A DNA stretch of 64,000 nucleotides from Guillardia theta CCMP2712. Taxonomy: Eukaryota > Protista > Cryptophyta. The position numbers were made by a program, and so were the translations under genes. Shown piece after piece: positions 520 through 42,329 of the stretch. The stretch covers positions 1-64,000 of the forward strand of contig NW_005434587.1 in the NCBI RefSeq assembly GCF_000315625.1, given 5' to 3'. The notes under the pieces are model-generated. The model ran no database searches. It was not told the DNA's origin and worked only from the letters and a program-made list of their open reading frames with translations. How positions within the stretch are numbered: the stretch's first letter is position 1; each line of letters starts with the position of its first letter.

Positions 520-983
520 TTGGTGGATGACAATACAAAGGTGTTGGAAAGTGCATGCTTATGGGAAGAAACCAAGGAATTTTCTATATATCTTTATTTG
601 TCAAGGGCGCGACCTAAAGGATCGGACATAGTAAATATATTATCGTGTATGGATACAATAACCAAGGGTAGCAAATTCATTTCAGAATATGAAAAGGAAC
701 ATGGCAAGCTTGGCAAGCATCGTAAGCATTTGAGCATGATTGGAACATTGTTGGCATTGAGAGGCCAGGGCATTGGTTCAATGTTGATGAAATACACATT
801 AGACAGAGTAGACTCGTCAAACGGTGCAGTAGTTGATGATTATCATTATCTGGAGAAGAGCAATCCCAAGAATGTGCCTTTGTATCAAAGACATGGATTT
901 TAACTGTTGGAGAGTTGGGAATCATGGGTGGCATGGTAACCTTTATGATTCGTAGAAGGGAGGCAAACAGAATCCCAGAATAA
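520..983 (+). pseudogene. GNAT-family N-acetyltransferase, frameshifted near the C-terminus
   Basis: Acetyl-CoA motif A LSMIGT...RGQGIGSMLM and motif B YLEKSNPKNVPLYQRHGF. A TAA follows GF, while the expected tail TVGELGIMGGMVTFMIR...* continues in another frame to 983. Start uncertain. Confidence 0.7.
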
Positions 984-2419
984 TCTTACAGTAGTACAAA
1001 ATCGACGCAGGGTGGCAGAGGATTCTTCAAGGTGGATTCATTGATTATGTCTTGTGTTTGAGATGGTATCCGCTTTGATATTGAGTTATAAAAGCTCTAC
1101 CTTTCTGTTTCCAATAGCTGCAGCTCATTTTTCCTTGGAAACATGAAGGAAGGTTGCGCTATCAACAGGTTTTGGTTTTGTTTCTTTCTACGGCGTATAT
1201 GAACTGAACAATGAGCAAGAATACCTGAGAACTATGCAAAATATCTTATTGCTTTGTAAGAATGATGCCCGGATGCGATGCACAGAGTGGCACAGTATCA
1301 TATCAATCAAGTACATGTTTAGGAGATGGTGTAGCTTATTGATGATAATCATCTTTGAGACCGTTTGATCTGAAATAAAGTCTATTCACGGTCACTGTGG
1401 CGGCCTTGGCGTACGGTACCGTAGCGGCTCAACGGTTCCGNNNNNNNNNNNNNNNNNNNNNNNNNNNNNNNNNNNNNNNNNNNNNNNNNNNNNNNNNNNN
1501 NNNNNNNNNNNNNNNNNNNNNNNNNNNNNNNNNNNNNNNNCGGAACGGGAGACAGCGTGGGGTCAGTGCCGAGCGCCAGTCGCACAGTCACCGGTTGCCA
1601 TCGTGTCTGAACNNNNNNNNNNNNNNNNNNNNNNNNNNNNNNNNNNNNNNNNNNNNNNNNNNNNNNNNNNNNNNNNNNNNNNNNNNNNNNNNNNNNNNNN
1701 NNNNNNNNNNNNNNNNNNNNNNNNNNNNNNNNNNNNNNNNNNNNNNNATGCAATCAGGCTTCTGGAACTTCGGAACCGAGCTGCAGCATGGTGATCGGCC
1801 CTGGGGTAGCCGCTGGAAGGGCTTTGGCTGATTCATCGTAGGTTTCCTTCATTTGATTTTCTTTCGAGCTAGTTCCTAATCACCGTTTCAGACTCTGTGA
1901 CGAGTCAATCATGCGTTGTTACGAGGCATGGAGGGATAGGTCACGATTCTTGCAGACCTCAGGATGAAGCAGCCTACTAGGAGGCTGATGAAGGGAGAGA
2001 ACGTTTTGAGATCTCCCGGCAGCGACATCACGTCCAAGCATCGACTTTGCTCAATCTTCAGCCAAAGGGGGATTACTTCGTATGGCATGCGAGCAACCAC
2101 AGATGAAGAGACGAGTGCTGGACAAATAGACAAATGACACGAGGTACAAGTGCACCTGCTTACTGTGTCATCAACTTGCTCCATTCAAGTGGCCGTGGAC
2201 TCGTCAGTGGGATGCAGGTTCAGAGATCACAAGTATCATTTGCACATCTTTTTATGAAGCCATACTAAGTCCGTGCTACATCAGGTGTGGAGTGAAGCAC
2301 TAGTATAGAAAAGCAAAAGCAAAAGAAGCATCTACATATTCATTGAGTTCCTTGCAGTCAAATGTCATCCTATGGTATGCTATGCGATGCAACCGTTGCA
2401 TTGCACCGTGATTGCAAGT

Positions 2420-3116
2420 TTAGCCCTTCTTGTTGCCGACGTCCACATACTTCTTCAGGTACAAGTTCTTTTTGAAAACCTCGTACATGGCATCTGCAAC
2501 ATCCACGTCTATGGACTTGTAATNNNNNNNNNNNNNNNNNNNNNNNNNNNNNNNNNNNNNNNNNNNNNNNNNNNNNNNNNNNNNNNNNNNNNNNNNNNNN
2601 NNNNNNNNNNNNNNNNNNNNNNNTGAACTCGAACGGGCGGAGGATCGTGAAGTCCACAGTGCCCCTGTATTCTTTTCGAAGCCACGTCTCAAACACCTCG
2701 ATGTCTGCATAGATGTTGTTGAGGATGCATGGCTTCACAAACCTTCGGAAAAACCAACCGGCGTTGGGGTGGTCGTGGCAAGAGGTGATTGCGATCAGCC
2801 TCTTGACCCCTTTTCTCTCCATCGCCTCTATAATGCGCGCGTACCCCTGTGAGAATATGACCGTCTTCTCTTTGATCCCGTCGGATCCTGTACATCCAAA
2901 CACCACGTCCTGCCCGACCAGCGCGTCCTCATAGGTCTTGGGGTCCAAAGCATCTGCCTTGATCCACTTGATCTTCGGTTGCTTCTTCATAGCAGCTTCA
3001 GGGTTGCGGGTCACGCCGGTGACCTGGTGTCCTGCTTCAAGGCACTTGTTGACGACCAGCTGGCCGATTCTTCCCGTTGCTCCAAAGACCAAAACATGCT
3101 GATTGCTGCTCGCCAT
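2420..3116 (-). CDS. NAD(P)H-binding Rossmann protein, flavin reductase/BLVRB-like (copy 1, spans an N gap)
   Basis: MASSNQHVLVFGATGRIG (GxxGxxG), GQDVVF, GVKRLI, DFTILRP. Identical to 3932..4591 where sequenced. Confidence 0.85.
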
Positions 3117-3931
3117 GGGCAAGTTGCACTGTGTGTTAGGTGCTGCCCTCCGAGGCTTTTTATGCGTGAGGTGCTGTCTACGACACCGGTGGTATTTCCA
3201 TTCAAATCGGCTATAAGGTGCGGTGGGGTACTTCGAACTCTTGGGGGGATGACTGCTGGCTTTACCAGCGGGGCCCTGAAAGATAGCTTTACTACTGAGT
3301 TGACGCCAAGGCTCTCGCCCCCTCTCATCCCCGTGCATCCCCTCCTGTCCCACTGCAGACATTGCTGCAGCTATTGACATTTGCTGCAGATTGCTGCAGA
3401 CATTGCAGCTGCAGCAATGTCTGTTGCATTGAGTAGTAAACCAATACTTTTACAGTAGGCTACAATGCCACTGATGCTGTGACTGTTCTATGGTACAAAA
3501 AATAACCCCCCTCCCCACCCCCCCGTCTTATATATAGAAGAAGTAAAGAGTAGTAAGCGAAATCGAATTTTCCTGGTACTAATTTTACAACACAGGGGAT
3601 TTCTATCAAAAGTCAATAATAAACAATAATAAACAAAATCTTTTGCAGAAACATACCAGCAGGGTCCTGAAGTGGGACAGGAGGGGGTGCAGGAGTGGGA
3701 CAGGAGGGGGTGCACGGGGATGAGAGGGGGCGAGAGCCTTGGCGTCAACTCAGTAGTAAAGCTATCTTTCAGGGCCCCGCTGGTAAAGCCAGCAGTCATC
3801 CCCCCAAGAGTTCGAAGTACCCCACCGCACCTTATAGCCGATTTGAATGGAAATACCACCGGTGTCGTAGACAGCACCTCACGCATAAAAAGCCTCGGAG
3901 GGCAGCACCTAACACACAGTGCAACTTGCCC

Positions 3932-4591
3932 ATGGCGAGCAGCAATCAGCATGTTTTGGTCTTTGGAGCAACGGGAAGAATCGGCCAGCTGGTCGTCAAC
4001 AAGTGCCTTGAAGCAGGACACCAGGTCACCGGCGTGACCCGCAACCCTGAAGCTGCTATGAAGAAGCAACCGAAGATCAAGTGGATCAAGGCAGATGCTT
4101 TGGACCCCAAGACCTATGAGGACGCGCTGGTCGGGCAGGACGTGGTGTTTGGATGTACAGGATCCGACGGGATCAAAGAGAAGACGGTCATATTCTCACA
4201 GGGGTACGCGCGCATTATAGAGGCGATGGAGAGAAAAGGGGTCAAGAGGCTGATCGCAATCACCTCTTGCCACGACCACCCCAACGCCGGTTGGTTTTTC
4301 CGAAGGTTTGTGAAGCCATGCATCCTCAACAACATCTATGCAGACATCGAGGTGTTTGAGACGTGGCTTCGAAAAGAATACAGGGGCACTGTGGACTTCA
4401 CGATCCTCCGCCCGTTCGAGTTCAAGAAAGGGAAGGGCGGCAAATACGTCATGGCGGAGTCCTACACCGCAGAGTCGACAGGCTGGAATTACAAGTCCAT
4501 AGACGTGGATGTTGCAGATGCCATGTACGAGGTTTTCAAAAAGAACTTGTACCTGAAGAAGTATGTGGACGTCGGCAACAAGAAGGGCTAA
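3932..4591 (+). CDS. NAD(P)H-binding Rossmann protein, flavin reductase/BLVRB-like (copy 2, 219 aa, intronless)
   Basis: ATG at 3932 just before the GATGRIG motif. Atypical SDR pattern ending SIDVDVADAM...KKG*. Confidence 0.88.
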   Translation: MASSNQHVLVFGATGRIGQLVVNKCLEAGHQVTGVTRNPEAAMKKQPKIKWIKADALDPKTYEDALVGQDVVFGCTGSDGIKEKTVIFSQGYARIIEAMERKGVKRLIAITSCHDHPNAGWFFRRFVKPCILNNIYADIEVFETWLRKEYRGTVDFTILRPFEFKKGKGGKYVMAESYTAESTGWNYKSIDVDVADAMYEVFKKNLYLKKYVDVGNKKG

Positions 4592-5949
4592 ACTTGCAAT
4601 CACGGTGCAATGCAACGGTTGCATCGCATAGCATACCATAGGATGACATTTGACTGCAAGGAACTCAATGAATATGTAGATGCTTCTTTTGCTTTTGCTT
4701 TTCTATACTAGTGCTTCACTCCACACCTGATGTAGCACGGACTTAGTATGGCTTCATAAAAAGATGTGCAAATGATACTTGTGATCTCTGAACCTGCATC
4801 CCACTGACGAGTCCACGGCCACTTGAATGGAGCAAGTTGATGACACAGTAAGCAGGTGCACTTGTACCTCGTGTCATTTGTCTATTTGTCCAGCACTCGT
4901 CTCTTCATCTGTGGTTGCTCGCATGCCATACGAAGTAATCCGCCTTTGGCTGAAGATTGAGCAAAGTCGATGCTTGGACGTGATGTCGCTGCCGGGAGAT
5001 CTCAAAACGTTCTCTCCCTTCATCAGCCTCCTAGTAGGCTGCTTCATCCTGAGGTCTGCAAGAATCGTGACCTATCCCTCCATGCCTCGTAACAACGCAT
5101 GATTGACTCGTCACAGAGTCTGAAACGGTGATTAGGAACTAGCTCGAAAGAAAATCAAATGAAGGAAACCTACGATGAATCAGCCAAAGCCCTTCCAGCG
5201 GCTACCCCAGGGCCGATCACCATGCTGCAGCTCGGTTCCGAAGTTCCAGAAGCCTGATTGCATCCACTAAAGAGCAACAACTTCGGATGCTGTCTGCGAT
5301 TCTTGCACAGCCGTGGGCGCTTCCTCGTTTGAGAACTTTCTGACGGTTCACTTATCTCAGCCGCTCGCCGCAAAGTTGCCAGCGTGCTCGCAGCCTATGT
5401 TCAGACACGATGGCAACCGGTGACTGTGCGACTGGCGCTCGGCACTGACCCCACGCTGTCTCCCGTTCCGGCGCCGGAATCGGACCTGGCGCCGGAACCG
5501 TTGAGCCGCTACGGTACCGTACGCCAAGGCCGCCACAGTGACCGTGAATAGACTTTATTTCAGATCAAACGGTCTCAAAGATGATTATCATCAATAAGCT
5601 ACACCATCTCCTAAACATGTACTTGATTGATATGATACCTGTGCCACTCTGTGCATCGCATCCGGCATCATTCTTACAAAGCAATAAGATATTTTGCATA
5701 GTTCTCAGGTATTCTTGCTCATTGTTCAGTTCATATACGCCGTAGAAAGAAACAAAACCAAAACCTGTTGATAGCGCAACCTTCCTTCATGTTTCCAAGG
5801 AAAAATGAGCTGCAGCTATTGGAAACAGAAAGGTAGAGCTTTTATAACTCAATATCAAAGCGGATACCATCTCAAACACAAGACATAATCAATGAATCCA
5901 CCTTGAAGAATCCTCTGCCACCCTGCGTCGATTTTGTACTACTGTAAGA

Positions 5950-6301
5950 TTATTCTGGGATTCTGTTTGCCTCCCTTCTACGAATCATAAAGGTTACCAT
6001 GCCACCCATGATTCCCAACTCTCCAACAGTTAAAATCCATGTCTTTGATACAAAGGCACATTCTTGGGATTGCTCTTCTCCAGATAATGATAATCATCAA
6101 CTACTGCACCGTTTGACGAGTCTACTCTGTCTAATGTGTATTTCATCAACATTGAACCAATGCCCTGGCCTCTCAATGCCAACAATGTTCCAATCATGCT
6201 CAAATGCTTACGATGCTTGCCAAGCTTGCCATGTTCCTTTTCATATTCTGAAATGAATTTGCTACCCTTGGTTATTGTATCCATACACGATAATATATTT
6301 A
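5950..6301 (-). pseudogene. Second GNAT copy, 5'-truncated, with the same frameshift
   Basis: Reverse complement of 632-983. The upstream coding segment is missing. Confidence 0.7.
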
Positions 6302-6729
6302 TTACGTATGCTGTTGCAGCAGCACTAATTGGCAGTGGTTTTCCTTGTTTTTTCCCTTCTTGAGGAACTAGTAAAGACCAAGAGGCTACGTACGCTGGCG
6401 AGGTGTATAATGCTAGAATCGAAGATGTGTACTGGACGTAGACGTACGGTACGTACAACACATTGGTATGATTGAAGCATGACAGTGAGGCTGTATAAAC
6501 CGACACACATGTTTACTCATTGCTGTATTACGGGTTAAAGCCTGACCTCGACATACTAGTAAGCAACCCATCTTAGACGTTGGCCACGTCACGAGTCGTC
6601 AGAATGGGATTGCACGAACATTGACGTGTGTTCTCTTACTGCTGTACGGATGATAAACAAATCTAGCTTCATTGTTCATCTGTTCTACTCCTAAGTGCAC
6701 TATCGCTCAGGCAAGTTGCTGGACTATAG

Positions 6730-34392: not shown

Positions 34393-35075
34393 GCTTCCAC
34401 AGATTGCTTAAATTGATAGGGTGGGTACAATTTTCTACCGGTACTTTCCTGATATAATTTGATTTCTAGGTACCAGGTACTTGAAGCATTAAGGGGGTGG
34501 AGTACCCCATGGGAGGGGAATTGAGAATTGAGAGTCCGTGACCTGGTCCGTGCTTGCTGAGCACTTTTTGGTATTTTATATTGTACGGCGTTGAGGACGT
34601 TCATAGCAGATTTTAGGATATGGGTCATCCTGCAGTACTTCTTCCATGTAAAAACTAATATTCTTTTGTAAAATGCAGTACCACAAGTTCAAAATGTGTT
34701 TTATACGGGGCCATCCAGATGCAGGGGTAGCAGTAAAACCCCAGGTGAGGGGTGGGGTTGTTTGACGGTCACCAGTAGGGGTGCGGGTTGCCTTATCCTT
34801 TAATCGACAAAAGGACTCCCGAAGGAGTCCTGGACCAGCATGACAGGGGTCATTGATAGGTTTCAATCACCCATCCAATGGGGCTGTATGAGGGTCTTAA
34901 AAAAGAAAAAAAAAAAAACTTCCCGCCTCCGACGGAAAGTTTGTGGCACTGCTCGTTTCATCTTCCCGCCATTACAGAGTTTGCGGTCCGACAATACACT
35001 GAAACGATGGTAATGAAAAAAATGTAGCGACTACCTGCTATCTAACATGGTTTCGCCAGACTAACATACTATAAC

Positions 35076-37137
35076 ATGCCGAGGAAGAGAAAACGAATTA
35101 CAGATGATTCAGACAACGGTCAAGAAATAAGTTATTCAAAACCATTCACGAGAGTCGTCAAATGTGGGTTATACTCGAGACTCAAGGTAGAGAACAGATC
35201 GATTTTAGACGTGATCGACAGATGGGTATTACATATCAGTCAGATCACATCAAGAGGCAGTATGATATTCAACTGTTTTCTGATATGGGGCAGGGATACA
35301 GGGAATTTACGATATGTAGTAGATGAAATCAAGAGAGCCAAATCGACCTTTTTCTGGAATGTTTTTACACTTGGAATGGAACAACATAGCCGTACAGATA
35401 ACAAGTATCCAACTCTACAACGTTTCTGGTCAGAGAAAAGACATCTTTTCGTTGATTTATGTAGAATTCGAGGAGACTCGCAAGCTATTGTATTCGCTGC
35501 AAATCAATATGGAACGAATTTCTACCAAGACCTGAAAGCAAATTTTACAAACCGATTGGAAAAGTTCATTGCCGAATTCTGCAAAGGAGAGTTACATATT
35601 AACCATCAGCAAGAAATCGAAGACGTGAAGAATGTATTGTTTCAAAGGAAAGATTACGAGTTGACGACAGAAGTGTTTAACAGGAATAATTCACAGCAGA
35701 TAGGAACCTTCATCGACCATATGAAACAACTAATTGGATTATCGGGGGACGAAGATCTTTTTAGTTTCAAATATGACAAATTTGATCATAGGTTGCAGAA
35801 AAATCTGTTTGAGATAATCGAGACACACATGTTCATGTTGAAGTTCTTCGAAGATCGTGGTCTCTCGAAAAAAACATTCAAGGCAGCACCAATGTCGAAA
35901 TTCGGCAGAAAACATCTAACAATCGATAATGATGTGATGTATTACATTTTGAAAGAAGCGAACAGTTTGAAACCGGGAGAAGATAAAAAATCGTTCATGA
36001 GAATAGATCAAACTTTGGAGAACTCTAAGAATTTCAGAAGGATTTTCGACTGTTCGAATCTGTTCAGAGATCAGAGAGAGGAGATTACAAGTATCACGAC
36101 AGACGGTGTATCGGTTTGTTTTCGCTTCACGTTAACTGTCAAAACAATCGATGGACTCGAACAGGAACCTTCATTGCGCACTACCAAATGGCTTGCCGAT
36201 AGAAAAAGGGCTGAACGGAAATCGGCGAAGAAGATATCAATATCATACAAAGTATTACATGAAAATTCAGAATACCAAAGAGAGATCGAAGAATGTAAAA
36301 ATTGCCCAAGGGTAATTGCGATCGACCCTGGGAGGAGCGTCATTATATCGGCCGTCGAACAATTCAGAGATGATCAACAAATAATCAGAAAAAGATTTCA
36401 GTTTTCGAGAAAACAATATTATCACGAGTCACATCTGAATCGCAATAAAAAGAAAAGAAAGACGTGGGATCAAGATATTCAATCGACATTGCACTATCTC
36501 AAGGGGTTCTCGAGTAAGTCTGGCGGCAGTCTATCAAGATTCGAAGACTATCTTCTTGCAGTTACAAGTCATTGGGAGGAGTTAACTTCGCATTATTCAA
36601 AGCGAAAATACGCCAGGATGAAATTCGACATCTACATTTCGAAACGAAAGTCAGTCGACAGGTTTATCCGTACAATGAAAGGAAAGGGAGAAATAGAACC
36701 TGTTATCGCATATGGAAATGCAAGGTTCCCGTCTACAGGACGTCGAGGAGAAAGGCCTGTACCGGTCAGGTGGATAAGAAGAAGATTCGAGAATCACTAC
36801 AGAGTCGTAGATGTTGACGAATACCGTACTACCAAGTGCTGTAACGATTGTGGTTCTGAGCTCGATGTGCTTCGACGGATTGAAAATACAGGGAAAGAAC
36901 CAGACGAGACCTGTAGGTTGAAAACAAGGAAAAGTGAAGTACGAGGATTGAAATTTTGCAGATCATCGAGGTAATGTCAAGTTTTGTATACTCCTGTAAT
37001 TCACCTTTTCATCTAACTGTTATCGTGACAGCTGTAAAGGAAAGCCGATCAAATCCAGGGACTTGAATGCTGCACTGAATATACTCACTTGTTTCAATGT
37101 GTTTCCTGAAAGACCGAATCACCTACGTCGCCCCTGA
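35076..37137 (+). CDS. Fanzor (Fanzor1-like) TnpB-family RNA-guided endonuclease; exons 35076-36970 and 37032-37137, 666 aa
   Basis: RuvC-I VIAIDPG (D417), TDGVSV, IAYGNA, VDEYRTT (E582, shifted catalytic Glu), zinc finger CNDC...CRSSSC, and RuvC-III SRDLNAALNI (D642) in exon 2. N-terminal PRKRKR. Confidence 0.93.
36971..37031 (+). other. 61-nt GT-AG spliceosomal intron in the Fanzor gene
   Basis: AG|GTAATG donor, CTAAC branch-like motif at ~37013-37017, GACAG| acceptor. Splicing restores the frame into CKGKPIKSRDLNAALNI. Confidence 0.88.
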
Positions 37138-37139
37138 GG

Positions 37140-37545
37140 TGAATTCAATGATTGTTGTCGCCCCCTCCCTACCCAGACTGCGTCCCTCGGGACTCGATGC
37201 CTAATTCCCTGCCTGCCTGCCTGCCTGCCCGGTGCCTGCCTCCATTATGATCCGATGTTTACGACATGTGATCATTGAAGTGACTGACTGGCATCATTTG
37301 GTAGGATTCATGTAAGGCTCCAACAACATCCGAAGACAATTTGGCAAAAAAAAAAAACTGCCGTTGTATGACGGAGAGTCGCGGCTCTCAATCATACGAC
37401 GGCAGTTCTGTGCGAAAACTTAGTTCGTCGTTCAGAAGGGTATTCACATATTCCGTCACATCATGTCACATCATGAGGGAGAGTACCCGTGGTAGATAGA
37501 TTCGTGGCGTTTATCTATTATTGTCTTCCCTAATCGCTGATTGTC
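37140..37545 (+). ncRNA. Candidate omegaRNA (scaffold plus 3' guide) of the Fanzor
   Basis: Lies immediately 3' of the ORF and has many complementary segments, including a 16-bp stem 37356-37371/37392-37407 with one G-U pair. Exact ends unknown. Confidence 0.7.
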
Positions 37546-37624
37546 CTCGTACTGATTTTTAACTTAACTTTGAGTAAAGAAAGGATCAGTATCTCCCTGC
37601 CTTGACGTATGGGTGTGTAGTCAT

Positions 37625-37830
37625 TGAGCCTCTCGGGTCCGACGGTCAATTCCCGTAGTAGCCACCGGGCGCCGCGCGGCGGTCGGACGCCGGGCGGGGC
37701 CCCGCCGCGCGGCGGCCGGGCCGACTCCCGGTCACCGGGCCGCGGGTTCCATACTCCGAGGCAGGCTACAGTACGGTAGTACTGACGACCGATACGGTCG
37801 GACTCAAGCGCGGCCCGGCCGGCGCGAAAC
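37625..37830. repeat. GC-rich palindromic dispersed repeat
   Basis: Same motif set (ccgggcc, cggtcac, gactc, acggta). Confidence 0.65.
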
Positions 37831-38254
37831 TGAGGCCTTTCCGAAGTTGGGCCATAATGATGATCGACGATCGTCACTGGCACCAAGATGGCCCGCCGTC
37901 CTGAAGAAGCACAAGTTTGTTAGACTTGTACTAGTCCAAAGTCACGCAGATATCACATCGACCTTAGTTGTAACAAGACAGTTTTTCCGAAGTTCAAGTT
38001 TGCTCAAGACCGAGTTTAATGCACACAAAACCAGAATTGAGGAGCACATGAGAGATAGACTGTATGCTAGGATGTGAAACCCAAGCATCCAGACATGAGA
38101 GGACCTTAGCAAGACGGCTAGGAAAGCCCCCTCTTCGTCCCACACGCTACATCGGCGGCGCCTTGACACGTAGTAAGTCGTCTTGGTTTACAGGAGAGTT
38201 TTTGTTAAGGCTCGGCGCTATCTGACTGGCACGGCTGGCATACGTTCCATCACG

Positions 38255-38385: not shown

Positions 38386-38545
38386 CCTTGCCTATCAGCG
38401 GCTTCCCTCCGGCCCCTGCTCCTTCCTACCCCCCCCGCCCTGAGCCAAGCCTCCCCGCCTGGGTCATAGTATCGGCACTCGACATTTATTATCTTCATCA
38501 ATCTTCGTCTACTTTACACGCCGGTCCCTCCTTCAAACCGGTCCT

Positions 38546-38821
38546 TCAGTCCCACACTGACGACAGCCAGTCCTCCTCTTCCGTCCCCACGTCCCCGACG
38601 TCCAGCGAGATCTCCCCTCCTCCGAACAGCGCCTCCATCATCGTCTTGCTCGCCTCCGCCTTCTCCTCGCTCGGCCCGTCTATCCCCCACCACCCCTCCA
38701 GCTCCTCGCCTGGTCGCGCTTGGTCGCCCGAGGCGGGCGAGCTGGCGGGCTCGGGCTCCTGGGCCTCCGACGCCTGGTCGAGAGCCGCGCGGTCGACTGA
38801 GGTCTGAGCCTCCCCCGCGTC

Positions 38822-38853
<32 letters not shown>

Positions 38854-39080
38854 GATCCCGCGTGTAGGGCCATCGATCCAGCCCCAGCCTCCGGCAGGCC
38901 GTCTTGAGGGAGGTGAGGGAGATGCCGAGGTGATGGGCCGCCTCTTGCTGGCGGAGGTGGAAGGGCTGCGAGAGAAGGAGGCGGCTGAGCTGCACGGTCT
39001 CGCGCTTGTTGGAGTGACGAGGGCGAGCCTGGACGGCGATACGCTGGAGGATGGTTGGGGAGGAAGGGGAGGAGGGGGAG
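38546..39080 (-). pseudogene. RWP-RK domain gene copy 1 (no in-frame ATG; possible pseudogene)
   Basis: FHLRQQEAAHHLGISLTSLKTACRRLGLDRWPY. 5' deletions relative to copy 2 remove the ATG. L>P change just before the domain. Confidence 0.65.
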
Positions 39081-40148
39081 GAAGGAGACGGAAGAGGGTG
39101 AGGGGGAAGGAGGGAGGGGCAGGAGAGGGGAGGAGAGGAGAGATGACAAAAGGCAGGGAGCTAGCACTGCCCCTTTTAAAAGCTTCTGGCATGTTTCCCC
39201 CAATCACGGTCAGCTCTATAGCCCGTCACGTTACCTGCGCATCATGTTCTATAGCCGGCCAGACAGCCCAGTGCTGCCCCACATACGAGTGCGGGATTGA
39301 GATAGGAGGAGACTATCTTCCTCTTGCTGCCCCCGGGTGGCGTGACCAGGGCTCCGGTCCGTGGGGTTGACGTGCTGTGCCTCGAAGGCTGTTCCGTGAC
39401 CGTACGGTTTTCTTTTGCTCGAGTCATCCGAGCGACTCCCTAGTCCGGGAGCCGGCCGGGGCACTGCGCCGGGCTCTCGGGCTCAAGGTATCTCTCCGAA
39501 ACGGGCCAGCCCAGCTCGGAGTTGAACTTTGGACGCCGCTGTGATCATCGGATCGTCGGATCAACGTGACTCCGATGGCCGCCGCGCTTGACGGATCAAC
39601 GTTCGCACGGCGCCGCCGCGCGGCAATCGGCAAGCATCCGAGCGCCGGATGTCAGCGGTCCGATCACGAGTCTCAGTCTTCAACTAGTATTCATGCCAGT
39701 GTCTCAGTCTTCAACTAGTATTCATGTCTGGGAGGTCTCAGGAGTTTAACATAACATTAAAAGCCACACCACAACTGCGAAGGAGAGAATGCCGGGACTC
39801 GTGACAAGCGGTAGACGTAAGATCTAGTTCAGTGCTAGCGGCGATTTCGTGGAACCATTGAATAATGCTAGGGCTGATCGGACAGGGGAATCCAGTGAAG
39901 CCCCGGGCCGGCTCCGAGTCCCATCGGACGACAAGCCTGTTGACCTACAACTACATCCGCTGCATATGAAATAGATCGTTGAAAAAAGAAGGCTGAGGTC
40001 TACAATCAACTGCCCTGACATGAAAGATGCCCTCCTCCTGCCTGTCCCTGCTCCAGCCTCCCCGCCTGGGTCATAGTACCGGCACTCGACATTTATTATC
40101 TTCATCAATCTTCGTCTACTTTACACGTCCCTCCTTCAAACCGGTCCT

Positions 40149-40424
40149 TCAGTCCCACACTGACGACAGCCAGTCCTCCTCTTCCATCCCCACGTCCCCG
40201 ACGTCCAGCGAGATCTCCCCTCCTCCGAACAGCGCCTCCATCATCGTCTTGCTCGCCTCCGCCTTCTCCTCGCTCGGCCCGTCTATCCCCCACCACCCCT
40301 CCAGCTCCTCGCCTGGTCGCGCTTGGTCGCCCGAGGCGGGCGAGCTGGCGGGCTCGGGCTCCTGGGCCTCCGACGCCTGGTCGAGAGCCGCGCGGTCGAC
40401 TGAGGTCTGAGCCTCCCCCGCGTC

Positions 40425-40456
<32 letters not shown>

Positions 40457-40817
40457 GATCCCGCGTGTAGGGCCATCGATCCAGCCCCAGCCTCCGGCAG
40501 GCCGTCTTGAGGGAGGTGAGGGAGATGCCGAGGTGATGGGCCGCCTCTTGCTGGCGGAGGTGGAAGAGCTGCGAGAGAAGGAGGCGGCTGAGCTGCACGG
40601 TCTCGCGCTTGTTGGAGTGACGAGGGCGAGCCTGGACGGCGATACGCTGGAGGATGGTTGGGGAGGAAGGGGAGGAGGGGAAGGAGGGAGAGGAGGAGGA
40701 GCAGGTAGAGTCAGACCAAGGCGAAGACGGAAGAGGGTGAGGGGGAAGGAGGGAGGGGCAGGAGAGGGAAGGAGAGGGGAGATGACAAAAGGCAGGGAGG
40801 GCGTGATGGGCGAGCAT
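40149..40817 (-). CDS. RWP-RK domain transcription factor copy 2 (222 aa)
   Basis: ATG-initiated ORF containing LFHLRQQEAAHHLGISLTSLKTACRRLGLDRWPY and an acidic tail. Confidence 0.85.
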
Positions 40818-41801
40818 GATGCTTGGACAGAGGCGAGCCGCGGAGTGTGTGGCAGGTGTAGGAGGATGGAGAAGTGTAGAGTAGCACTGCCCCTTTTAAA
40901 AGCTTCTGGCATGTTTCCCCCAATGTCAGCTCTATAGCCCGTCACGTTACCTGCGCATCATGTTCTATAGCCGGCCAGACGGCCCAGTGCTGCCCCACAT
41001 ACGAGTGCGGGATTGAGATAGGAGGAGACTATCTTCCTCTTGCTGCCCCCGGGTGGCATGACCAGGGCTCCGGTCCGTGGGGTTGACGTGCTGTGCCTCG
41101 AAGGCTGTTCCGTGACGGTTTTCTGTTGCTCATCCGACTCCCTAGTCCGGGAGCCACTGCTGCGCCCGGGCCGGGCTCTCGGGCTCAAGGTATCCGAAAA
41201 ACCAGCTCAGCTCGGAGTTGAACTTTGGACGCTGATCGTTGGATCAACTTGTGACTCCGATGGCTGCTGCGCGCTTGACGGACTCCTTGTCTGAACGTTC
41301 GTCGGCGGCGCCGCCGCAATCGGCGCCGAGCATCCGATGCGAGCGATCGATGTCAGCGGTCAGATCACGAGTCTCAGTCTTCAACTAGTATTCATACATC
41401 AACATTAAAAGCCACACCACACTGCGAAGAAGAGAATGCCGGGACTCATGACAAGCGGAACAACGGTAGACGTAAGATCTAGTTGCTAGCGGCGATTTCG
41501 TTGAATAATCATGCGGCTAGCGGCTGATCGGACAGGGGAATCCAGTGAAGCCCCGGGCCGGCTCCGAGTCCCATCGGACGACAAGCTGTTGACCTACAAC
41601 TACATCCGCTGCATATGAAATAGATCGTTGAAAAAAGAAGGCTGAGGTCTACAATCAACTGCCCTGACATGAAAGATGCCCTCCTCCTGCCTGTCCCTGC
41701 TCCAGCCTCCCCGCCTGGGTCATAGTATCGGCACTCGACATTTATTATCTTCATCAATCTTCGTCTACTTTACACGCCGGTCCCTCCTTCAAACCGGTCC
41801 T

Positions 41802-42017
41802 TCAGTCCCACACTGACGACAGCCAGTCCTCCTCTTCCGTCCCCACGTCCCCGACGTCCAGCGAGATCTCCCCTCCTCCGAACAGCGCCTCCATCATCGT
41901 CTCGCCTGGTCGCGCTTGGTCGCCCGAGGCGGGCGAGCTGGCGGGCTCGGGCTCCTGGGCCTCCGACGCCTGGTCGAGAGCCGCGCGGTCGACTGAGGTC
42001 TGGGCCTCCCCCGCGTC

Positions 42018-42052
<35 letters not shown>

Positions 42053-42329
42053 GATCCCGCGTGTAGGGCCATCGATCCAGCCCCAGCCTCCGGCAGGCCG
42101 TCTTGAGGGAGGTGAGGGAGATGCCGAGGTGATGGGCCGCCTCTTGCTGGCGGAGGTGGAAGAGCTGCGAGAGAAGGAGGCGGCTGAGCTGCACGGTCTC
42201 GCGCTTGTTGGAGTGACGGGGGCGAGCCTGGACGGCGATACGCTGGAGGATGGTTGGGGAGGAAGGGGAGGAGGGGAAGGAAGGAGAGGAGGAGGATGAA
42301 TCTGTATCAGAGAGGATCAAGATTGCCAT
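41802..42329 (-). CDS. RWP-RK domain transcription factor copy 3 (175 aa; 20-aa in-frame deletion, distinct N-terminus)
   Basis: ATG at 42329 (MAILILSD...), same domain, lacks ELEGWWGIDGPSEEKAEASK. Confidence 0.85.

Follow-up and report, generated by a model that had tools for sequence, protein, structure and literature searches.

A four-hairpin block at the 3' end of a Fanzor1 element in Guillardia theta as probable omegaRNA scaffold

The window, i.e., the whole stretch of 64,000 nucleotides of Guillardia theta DNA that was analysed, contains a block of four hairpins on the plus strand (37357-37521) which probably represents the scaffold of a Fanzor1 omegaRNA. This scaffold would comprise about 165-215 nt, depending on a start at 37357 or already at 37305, and would be located in the 3'UTR of the Fanzor gene. 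The position of the block, its end point, its strand bias and its size class, together with the precedents of GtFz1 and Cre-1, argue for a scaffold at 37357-37521, possibly from 37305. As expected for an omegaRNA, the block lies on the same strand as the Fanzor gene and directly 3' of it, it stops at the right end of a mobile element beyond which the copies differ (two distinct right flanks), and its stable structure is specific to the sense strand (z −5.82 vs. −2.43). An earlier note, made from the letters of 37140-37530, had proposed a two-domain omegaRNA scaffold for this locus. Its second domain corresponds to the structured, strand-biased block 3' of the Fanzor gene that ends where the copies diverge, whereas its first domain has to be removed from the scaffold. 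Otherwise, the biology is as the Fanzor literature leads one to expect, and the locus adds one more case, shorter than proposed and rather typical, to a known system.

The Fanzor1 gene and its mobile element

The gene adjoining the hairpin block is, as read from its translation, an intact Fanzor1 gene on the same strand. Its first coding exon (35076-36970, plus strand), assigned by translation as well as by structure and profile matches, lies within an open reading frame at 35076-36974 (plus strand), the product of which has 632 amino acids. It is followed by a coding-sequence intron of 61 nt with GT..AG borders (36971-37031, plus strand), which is documented by a joint 36968->37030 (cut +2) in two contigs of the run X8 and was not found in the DNA run X1. 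The last coding exon (37032-37137, plus strand), translated in frame 2, contributes the RuvC-III motif SRDLNAALNIL and ends with the stop codon TGA at 37135-37137. By manual count, the spliced product comprises 666 amino acids, starting with MPRKRKR. Exon 1 encodes this N-terminal PRKRKR motif, one half of a zinc finger (CCNDCG), the RuvC-I Asp within VIAIDPGRS and the RuvC-II Glu within DEYRTTK. Thus, all D/E/D motifs of RuvC are present, with an Asp at the third catalytic position, and D417 and E582 are invariant among the homologues compared.

The best match among PDB entries was SpuFz1 (8gkh, E 9e-7), and a profile search built on three sequences reached SpuFz1 with 8.9e-14 and GtFz1 with 2e-4, while Pfam returned only a weak Cas12f1-like TNB match. 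A protein word search with the full exon 1 revealed an identical protein and two relatives at 25-30% identity, and nothing else. The same search with the C-terminal 200 amino acids, aimed at fragments on short contigs, gave no match, and neither did a scan of JGI metagenomes by protein. The position of the coding intron, after EVRGL(K/R), is common to the gene in the window and the homologue P0003, the intron of which (L004 1972-2029) consists largely of two adjacent palindromes. The three distant homologue loci L003-L005 offer 221 nt (L003), about 146 nt (L004) and less (L005, which is shorter) of 3' sequence beyond the gene and are too diverged for a comparison of guide-RNA structure.

The Fanzor gene is the sole gene of a multicopy mobile element of 2.7 kb (34797-37517, plus strand), which was delimited by copy comparison and word depth. 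Two ENA metagenome contigs, L001 and L002, carry the identical 632-amino-acid product and match the window from 34788/34791 to 37520 at 99.3-99.4%, being unrelated to it beyond these positions on both sides. This comparison covered three distinct flanks on the left and two on the right (the right one is common to L001 and L002), and the ends of the element fall at about 34793-34797 (left) and 37520/37521 (right). In the DNA run X1, the summed word depth was about 53-75 inside the element and about 4.4-5 in the flanks, with a drop from about 55-60 to about 5 at the right end. This contrast, which is one of word depth and not of copy number, indicates that the element is some tenfold more abundant than the DNA around it; as a rough guide, the depth suggests a dozen copies or so. 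Within the window, no second or ORF-less copy was found. A scan of JGI metagenomes with a 30-nt pattern of the right end gave no match. As the hairpin block shows the same depth as the ORF, it does not constitute a repeat of its own with a higher copy number, nor is any excess of ORF-less copies indicated.

Both junctions feature a TTAT or TTAA motif. On the left side, the copies diverge leftward of TTAT at 34793-34796, a candidate target-site copy and candidate TAM; the flanks read C-TTAT in the window, C-TTAT in L001 and C-TTAA in L002, each followed by the common sequence CCTTTAATCGAC from 34797. On the right side, the copies are alike through ...TATCTA-TTA (37520) and continue with T in the window and with A in L001 and L002. 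TTAT at 37518-37521 (TTAA in L001 and L002) is the candidate right copy of a 4-bp target-site duplication. The resulting junction pairs are TTAT/TTAT in the window, TTAA/TTAA in L002 and TTAT/TTAA in L001, which may be a chimeric assembly of two copies. As judged from these three contigs, the pattern fits a 4-bp TTAA-type target-site duplication, short of proof. With regard to a piggyBac-like TTAA cut-and-paste element, TTAA and TTAT junctions are mixed among the three contigs, and no terminal inverted repeat was found between the left and the right end. The element contains no transposase gene.

Further features of the element include a 7-bp hairpin at its left end (GGACTCC/GGAGTCC, 34813-34830) and, in the same left-end region (34797-34925), a long A-run at about 34899-34919 whose length varies between copies. 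Besides, a diverged subfamily of the element was recognized by contigs with 5-7% differences over 36737-37128 (8 in 147 nt, 6 in 108 and 7 in 99). This subfamily is transcribed, one such contig featuring the spliced coding junction, and no contig of it could be placed at the hairpin block.

The hairpin block at the right end

The structure of the flagged stretch was assessed by MFE folding against dinucleotide shuffles, with 100 shuffles per strand for the whole stretch and 200 for sub-stretches. For the whole of 37140-37530, folding energies of −126.3 kcal/mol on the plus strand (z −3.72, 0/100 shuffles as good) and −124.6 kcal/mol on the minus strand (z −2.96, 1/100 shuffles as good) were obtained. 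The second half (37305-37521) reached −71.8 kcal/mol on the plus strand (z −5.82), an energy that none of 200 shuffles attained, and −58.8 kcal/mol on the minus strand (z −2.43, 2/200 shuffles as good).

In the MFE structure, the terminal exon starts with a mostly unpaired part (37305-37356, plus strand), in which 37330-37344 forms a weak hairpin of 5 bp, followed by an A12 run at 37346-37357. The latter reads A9CAA in other copies, position 37355 being C in L001, in L002 and in all X1 depth. The four hairpins, all given here on the plus strand, follow in close succession. H1 (37357-37406, 15 + 6 bp) is by far the most stable with −34.3 kcal/mol on the plus and −30.0 kcal/mol on the minus strand (z −8.4 and −7.4, respectively), and its sequence is identical in three copies. 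H2 (37407-37436, 11 bp) is weak (−6.7 vs. −5.5 kcal/mol) and alone not significant (z −1.5). H3 (37438-37488, 17 bp with an 8-bp base) amounts to −15.1 vs. −10.5 kcal/mol, with z −2.6 on the plus and −0.2 on the minus strand. Finally, H4 (37489-37521, 12-13 bp including 5 G·U) shows −9.4 kcal/mol on the plus and −2.2 kcal/mol on the minus strand, and the terminal bases of the element together with TTA(T/A) make up its 3' arm. The entire block 37357-37521 follows the stop codon at a distance of 220 nt in the genome and of 54 nt in the spliced RNA.

These hairpins largely reproduce what the earlier note had read from the letters. All six perfect pairings that it listed are found in place, and the imperfect pair 37438-45/37481-88 is present as well, its single mismatch being a G·U. 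MFE folding recovered the long stem at 37356/7-37406/7, capped by GAGAG/CTCTC, as well as the hairpins 37407-37436 and 37489-37521. The impression that several mismatches are G-U compatible holds for the second domain, as the MFE structure of 37305-37521 features 10 G·U among 62 pairs vs. a single A·C opposition (a G·U on the other strand), and four of four hairpins are more stable on the plus strand.

Between copies, differences occur outside the stems, namely in the A-run, in the distal part of H3 and in an intronic microsatellite. The distal H3 is affected by a 10-nt indel at about 37455-37465 in L002, X1 and X8 and by a 4-nt-shorter version with two substitutions in L001, its base being unchanged in all variants. 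Among these copies, which are about 99% identical, no stem substitutions were found, and L001 folds alike, H4 included. A search of the whole window against Rfam at gathering thresholds gave no match.

A structured block in this place could also be a transposon-end or mRNA 3'UTR feature that lacks a guide function, e.g., a set of subterminal binding sites, DNA hairpins for a trans-acting transposase or a 3'UTR element for stability or termination. Its location at the very end of a mobile element which encodes no transposase would suit such a role, and so would H1, a near-perfect palindrome of nearly equal stability on both strands. Nevertheless, H3 and H4 form well on the sense strand only, and G·U pairs clearly outnumber A·C oppositions. 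Moreover, the left end carries no matching inverted copy of the hairpins, and a guide RNA occupies the same position in every characterised Fanzor/TnpB. A block unrelated to guide RNA is thus regarded as unlikely, and a scaffold remains the preferred explanation.

A non-canonical AC..GG joint (37325-37375) was observed within the same exon in a single contig of either RNA-derived run (X8, X13) and not in the DNA run X1. It skips 49 nt, comprising the A-run and the 5' arm of H1, and could reflect a deleted copy, a jump of the reverse transcription at a strong hairpin, or processing.

The 3'UTR intron and the limits of the proposed scaffold

The first domain of the earlier note is an ordinary spliceosomal 3'UTR intron of 166 nt with GT..AG borders (37139-37304, plus strand). 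It starts one base past the stop codon, the flagged stretch 37140-37530 starting three bases past it. Reads and contigs of four runs (X1, X8, X13, X22), of which X1 is a DNA run, were mapped over 34500-37900. The joint 37136->37303 (cut +2; 37138|37305) was found in two contigs of X8 and in two contigs of X13 and not in X1, a contig of which spans 36854-37520 unspliced. Since contigs of X8 and X13 carry joints missing from X1, both runs hold RNA-derived sequence. The intron contains the whole first domain except for its outer 3' halves, as ggtagg straddles the acceptor and caacaa lies in the next exon. It also includes a (GCCT)n run, which is one unit shorter in L001 and L002.

The scaffold of up to 390 nt suggested in the earlier note would imply that an unspliced RNA of 380 nt (37140-37521) with a folded first domain is the functional form. 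The pairings proposed for this domain do exist, and an intron-retaining RNA may exist too, as the depth of the intron persists in the contigs of X8 (5.5 vs. 10.9 at the joint) and X13 (4.1 vs. 7.4). These runs therefore also contain unspliced RNA or carried-over DNA, and the residual depth could stem from pre-mRNA or from such DNA. Against a two-domain RNA, canonical splicing removes the first domain in two independent runs, a length-variable microsatellite is located within it, and known Fanzor1 guide RNAs have 75-150 nt. Furthermore, this domain folds no better than shuffled sequence, with −37.1 kcal/mol for the intron 37139-37304 (plus strand, z −0.48, 63/200 shuffles as good) and −46.2 kcal/mol for the full first domain 37144-37326 (plus strand, z −1.14, 29/200 shuffles as good). 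The comparison with shuffles which the earlier note had called for thus came out in favour of its second domain and failed for its first. The excess structure of the flagged stretch resides entirely in the second half, and a functional two-domain scaffold appears very improbable.

The limits of the second domain require correction as well. As the element ends at 37520/37521, the outer stem of this domain in the earlier note (37332-40/37520-28) makes use of flank DNA, i.e., it pairs the element with a copy-specific flank and is not supported as part of the scaffold. The flank of the other copy offers a complement to 37332-40 of at most 5 nt. A 9-nt complement between flank and scaffold is rare by chance (92/20,000 random 15-mers) but absent in the other copy; it is treated as copy-specific and was rejected as a functional feature. 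Likewise, neither of the two guide starts considered before agrees with the copies: 37489 is where the conserved last hairpin H4 begins, and 37531 lies about 10 nt inside the flank. Conservation drops at 37520/37521, so that a guide, if any, starts at 37521/37522.

That the structure arose by chance in repeat-rich, low-complexity sequence is hardly credible: it is known from one sequence family only, without covariation, and the window is rich in simple repeats, but 0/200 dinucleotide shuffles reach the observed energy, H1 alone attains z −8.4, and the block stays intact in independent copies while adjacent indels accumulate.

The intron might nevertheless take part in guide-RNA biogenesis: splicing would put the scaffold into a short last exon of an RNA made by Pol II, and spliced and retained forms would divide the transcripts between use as mRNA and as guide RNA. 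This idea is quite doubtful. If true, it would constitute a eukaryotic spliceosomal counterpart of the interplay of intron and omegaRNA in bacterial IS607 elements. In IS607 TnpB elements, a group I intron and the omegaRNA overlap at the transposon end (PMC10690162), and in both cases an intron adjoins the guide RNA, a candidate one in the window, at the end of a transposon. As intron and guide RNA are encoded side by side in IS607, a single transcript may serve for splicing as well as for the production of guide RNA. The IS607 intron, however, belongs to group I, splices itself and spans a transposon of bacteria, whereas the intron in the window is a spliceosomal GT..AG intron in a eukaryotic 3'UTR.

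Transcription, candidate guide and known Fanzor systems

The plus-strand joint 37138|37305 in X8 and X13 demonstrates sense transcripts which enter the terminal exon. One contig of X8 covers 37303-37520 and then continues for 195 nt into the flank of another copy; hence, the right end is covered in X8, with sequence running on into the flank. Such contigs give neither the ends of the RNA nor its strand beyond the splice joint. In the raw-read RNA run X22, of which about 6% was read, there was essentially no usable coverage of 37365-37536. Two signals of this run were considered as guide RNA and rejected: at 37345-37364, the plus-strand signal consists of partial reads piled up on the A-run, and a hyper-abundant repeat located outside the element accounts for the depth at 37464-37577. 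In addition, four CT..AC joints on the minus strand (36210->36276, 36326->36565, 36631->36700 and 37031->37089), present in contigs of X8 and X13 and in a few X22 reads, point to a spliced transcript that runs antisense across the coding region of the Fanzor gene (36210-37089). Nearly all ORF coverage in X22 has the direction of these joints. As antisense spliced transcripts cross the element, part of the RNA signal over the right end could be antisense.

Under the scaffold reading, transcription would start inside the element, pass the coding intron and then the intron at 37139-37304, and run through the right end into the flank. We infer that a discrete small RNA with a 5' end of its own, presumably trimmed to scaffold plus guide, is subsequently bound by the Fanzor protein. 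The flank from 37521/37522 would provide the guide, with the stem of H4 running right up to the TTA(T/A) junction. In the window, the candidate guide is the copy-specific flank at 37522-37541 (plus strand), the length of which is assumed from known Fanzors and the layout of which is drawn by analogy with GtFz1, SpuFz1 and Cre-1. This flank differs wholly from that of L001 and L002 from 37521 on. The Fanzor complex might then cut TTAA/TTAT plus flank sequence, which is equivalent to an unoccupied or excised insertion site, and TTAA/TTAT beside the left end would be the motif (the putative TAM) that defines the empty site together with the flank. With a truly duplicated TTAA, TAM and target would be present at the right junction of the occupied site as well, which presents a self-targeting problem for the omegaRNA reading.

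For GtFz1, the omegaRNA scaffold has 139 nt and folds into four stem-loops, with TTAAN as the TAM (Saito et al., 2023, PMC10432273; Xu et al., 2024, PMC11423790). Like the block described here, this RNA is encoded in sense orientation at the 3' terminus of a Fanzor1 locus and features four stem-loops, and the GtFz1 TAM resembles the TTAA/TTAT flanks of the window element. The terminal 10 nt of the GtFz1 scaffold are complementary to an upstream 10-mer; their counterpart in the window would be the 3' arm of H4, which is paired up to the guide. Furthermore, SL3 of GtFz1 is disordered and dispensable, and H3 is the part of the block that varies between copies. Nevertheless, scaffold and protein show no recognisable sequence similarity by eye, the GtFz1 chain being reached by profile only (E 2e-4), and peptides of the window Fanzor are absent from the supplement of Saito et al. 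The GtFz1 omegaRNA overlaps the last 17 codons, whereas the block in the window is set apart from the stop codon by the 166-nt intron. GtFz1 has Asn instead of Asp at the third catalytic position, its SL1 comprises 7 bp compared to 21 bp in the first strong hairpin of the window, and its loci were reported to lack clear ends, whereas the ends of the window element are sharp.

A second precedent is the guide RNA of the HERMES/Fanzor Cre-1 of Chlamydomonas reinhardtii, which lies in the 3'UTR and starts about 100 bp past the coding end (Jiang et al., 2023, bioRxiv 10.1101/2023.06.13.544871). In both cases, the guide RNA, which is a candidate in the window, belongs to the 3'UTR of an intron-containing Fanzor mRNA at some distance from the coding end. 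Conserved among the copies, the Cre-1 guide RNA extends past the end of the element and into the target-site duplication, which resembles the layout proposed here. In contrast to the window element with its TTAA/TTAT flanks and no terminal repeats detected, the Cre elements belong to the non-autonomous Helitrons and have asymmetric terminal repeats. The Cre-1 RNA was detected by small-RNA sequencing, whereas the candidate scaffold in the window is known from sequence, folding and long-RNA contigs.

The closest solved protein relative of the window Fanzor is SpuFz1 of Spizellomyces punctatus. Its scaffold spans the right end of the element, with a variable guide of 14-15 nt beyond, similar to the layout proposed for the window. 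However, the SpuFz1 scaffold has 75 nt and two stem-loops compared to at least 165 nt of the block in the window, its element ends in 30-nt inverted repeats of which none were found here, and it is accompanied by many ORF-less 'ghost' copies, an excess of which is not indicated by depth for the window element.

For a second Fanzor1 family, which features the canonical D-E-D active site and is closer in sequence to SpuFz1 than to GtFz1, the analysis offers a scaffold that can be tested (37357-37521, or from 37305), together with a position at which the guide would start (37521/37522) and TTAA/TTAT as candidate TAM. Besides, nearly half of the apparent scaffold turned out to be an intron; the prediction of eukaryotic guide RNAs from sequence thus needs evidence on splicing.

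Some repeats in the neighbouring sequence deserve mention. A 43-nt sequence at 37537-37579, 16 nt past the end of the element, occurs once in the window and is hyper-abundant elsewhere, with a word depth of up to about 36,000 in X1, compared to about 5 for the neighbouring DNA, and a very high depth in the RNA-run contigs as well (about 12,800 in X8). As contigs return on this sequence with variable inserts of 3-40 nt between the units, it forms arrays with variable spacers elsewhere. Near the start of the window (626-6307), inverted-repeat arms of 644, 146, 72, 776 and 731 nt, which are 100% complementary, together form one large palindrome of about 5.7 kb that is almost perfect and represents either a genuine foldback or an artefact of assembly. 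Finally, three tandem units of about 1.6 kb with 97-100% identity occupy 38448-42300, starting about 0.9 kb to the right of the element.
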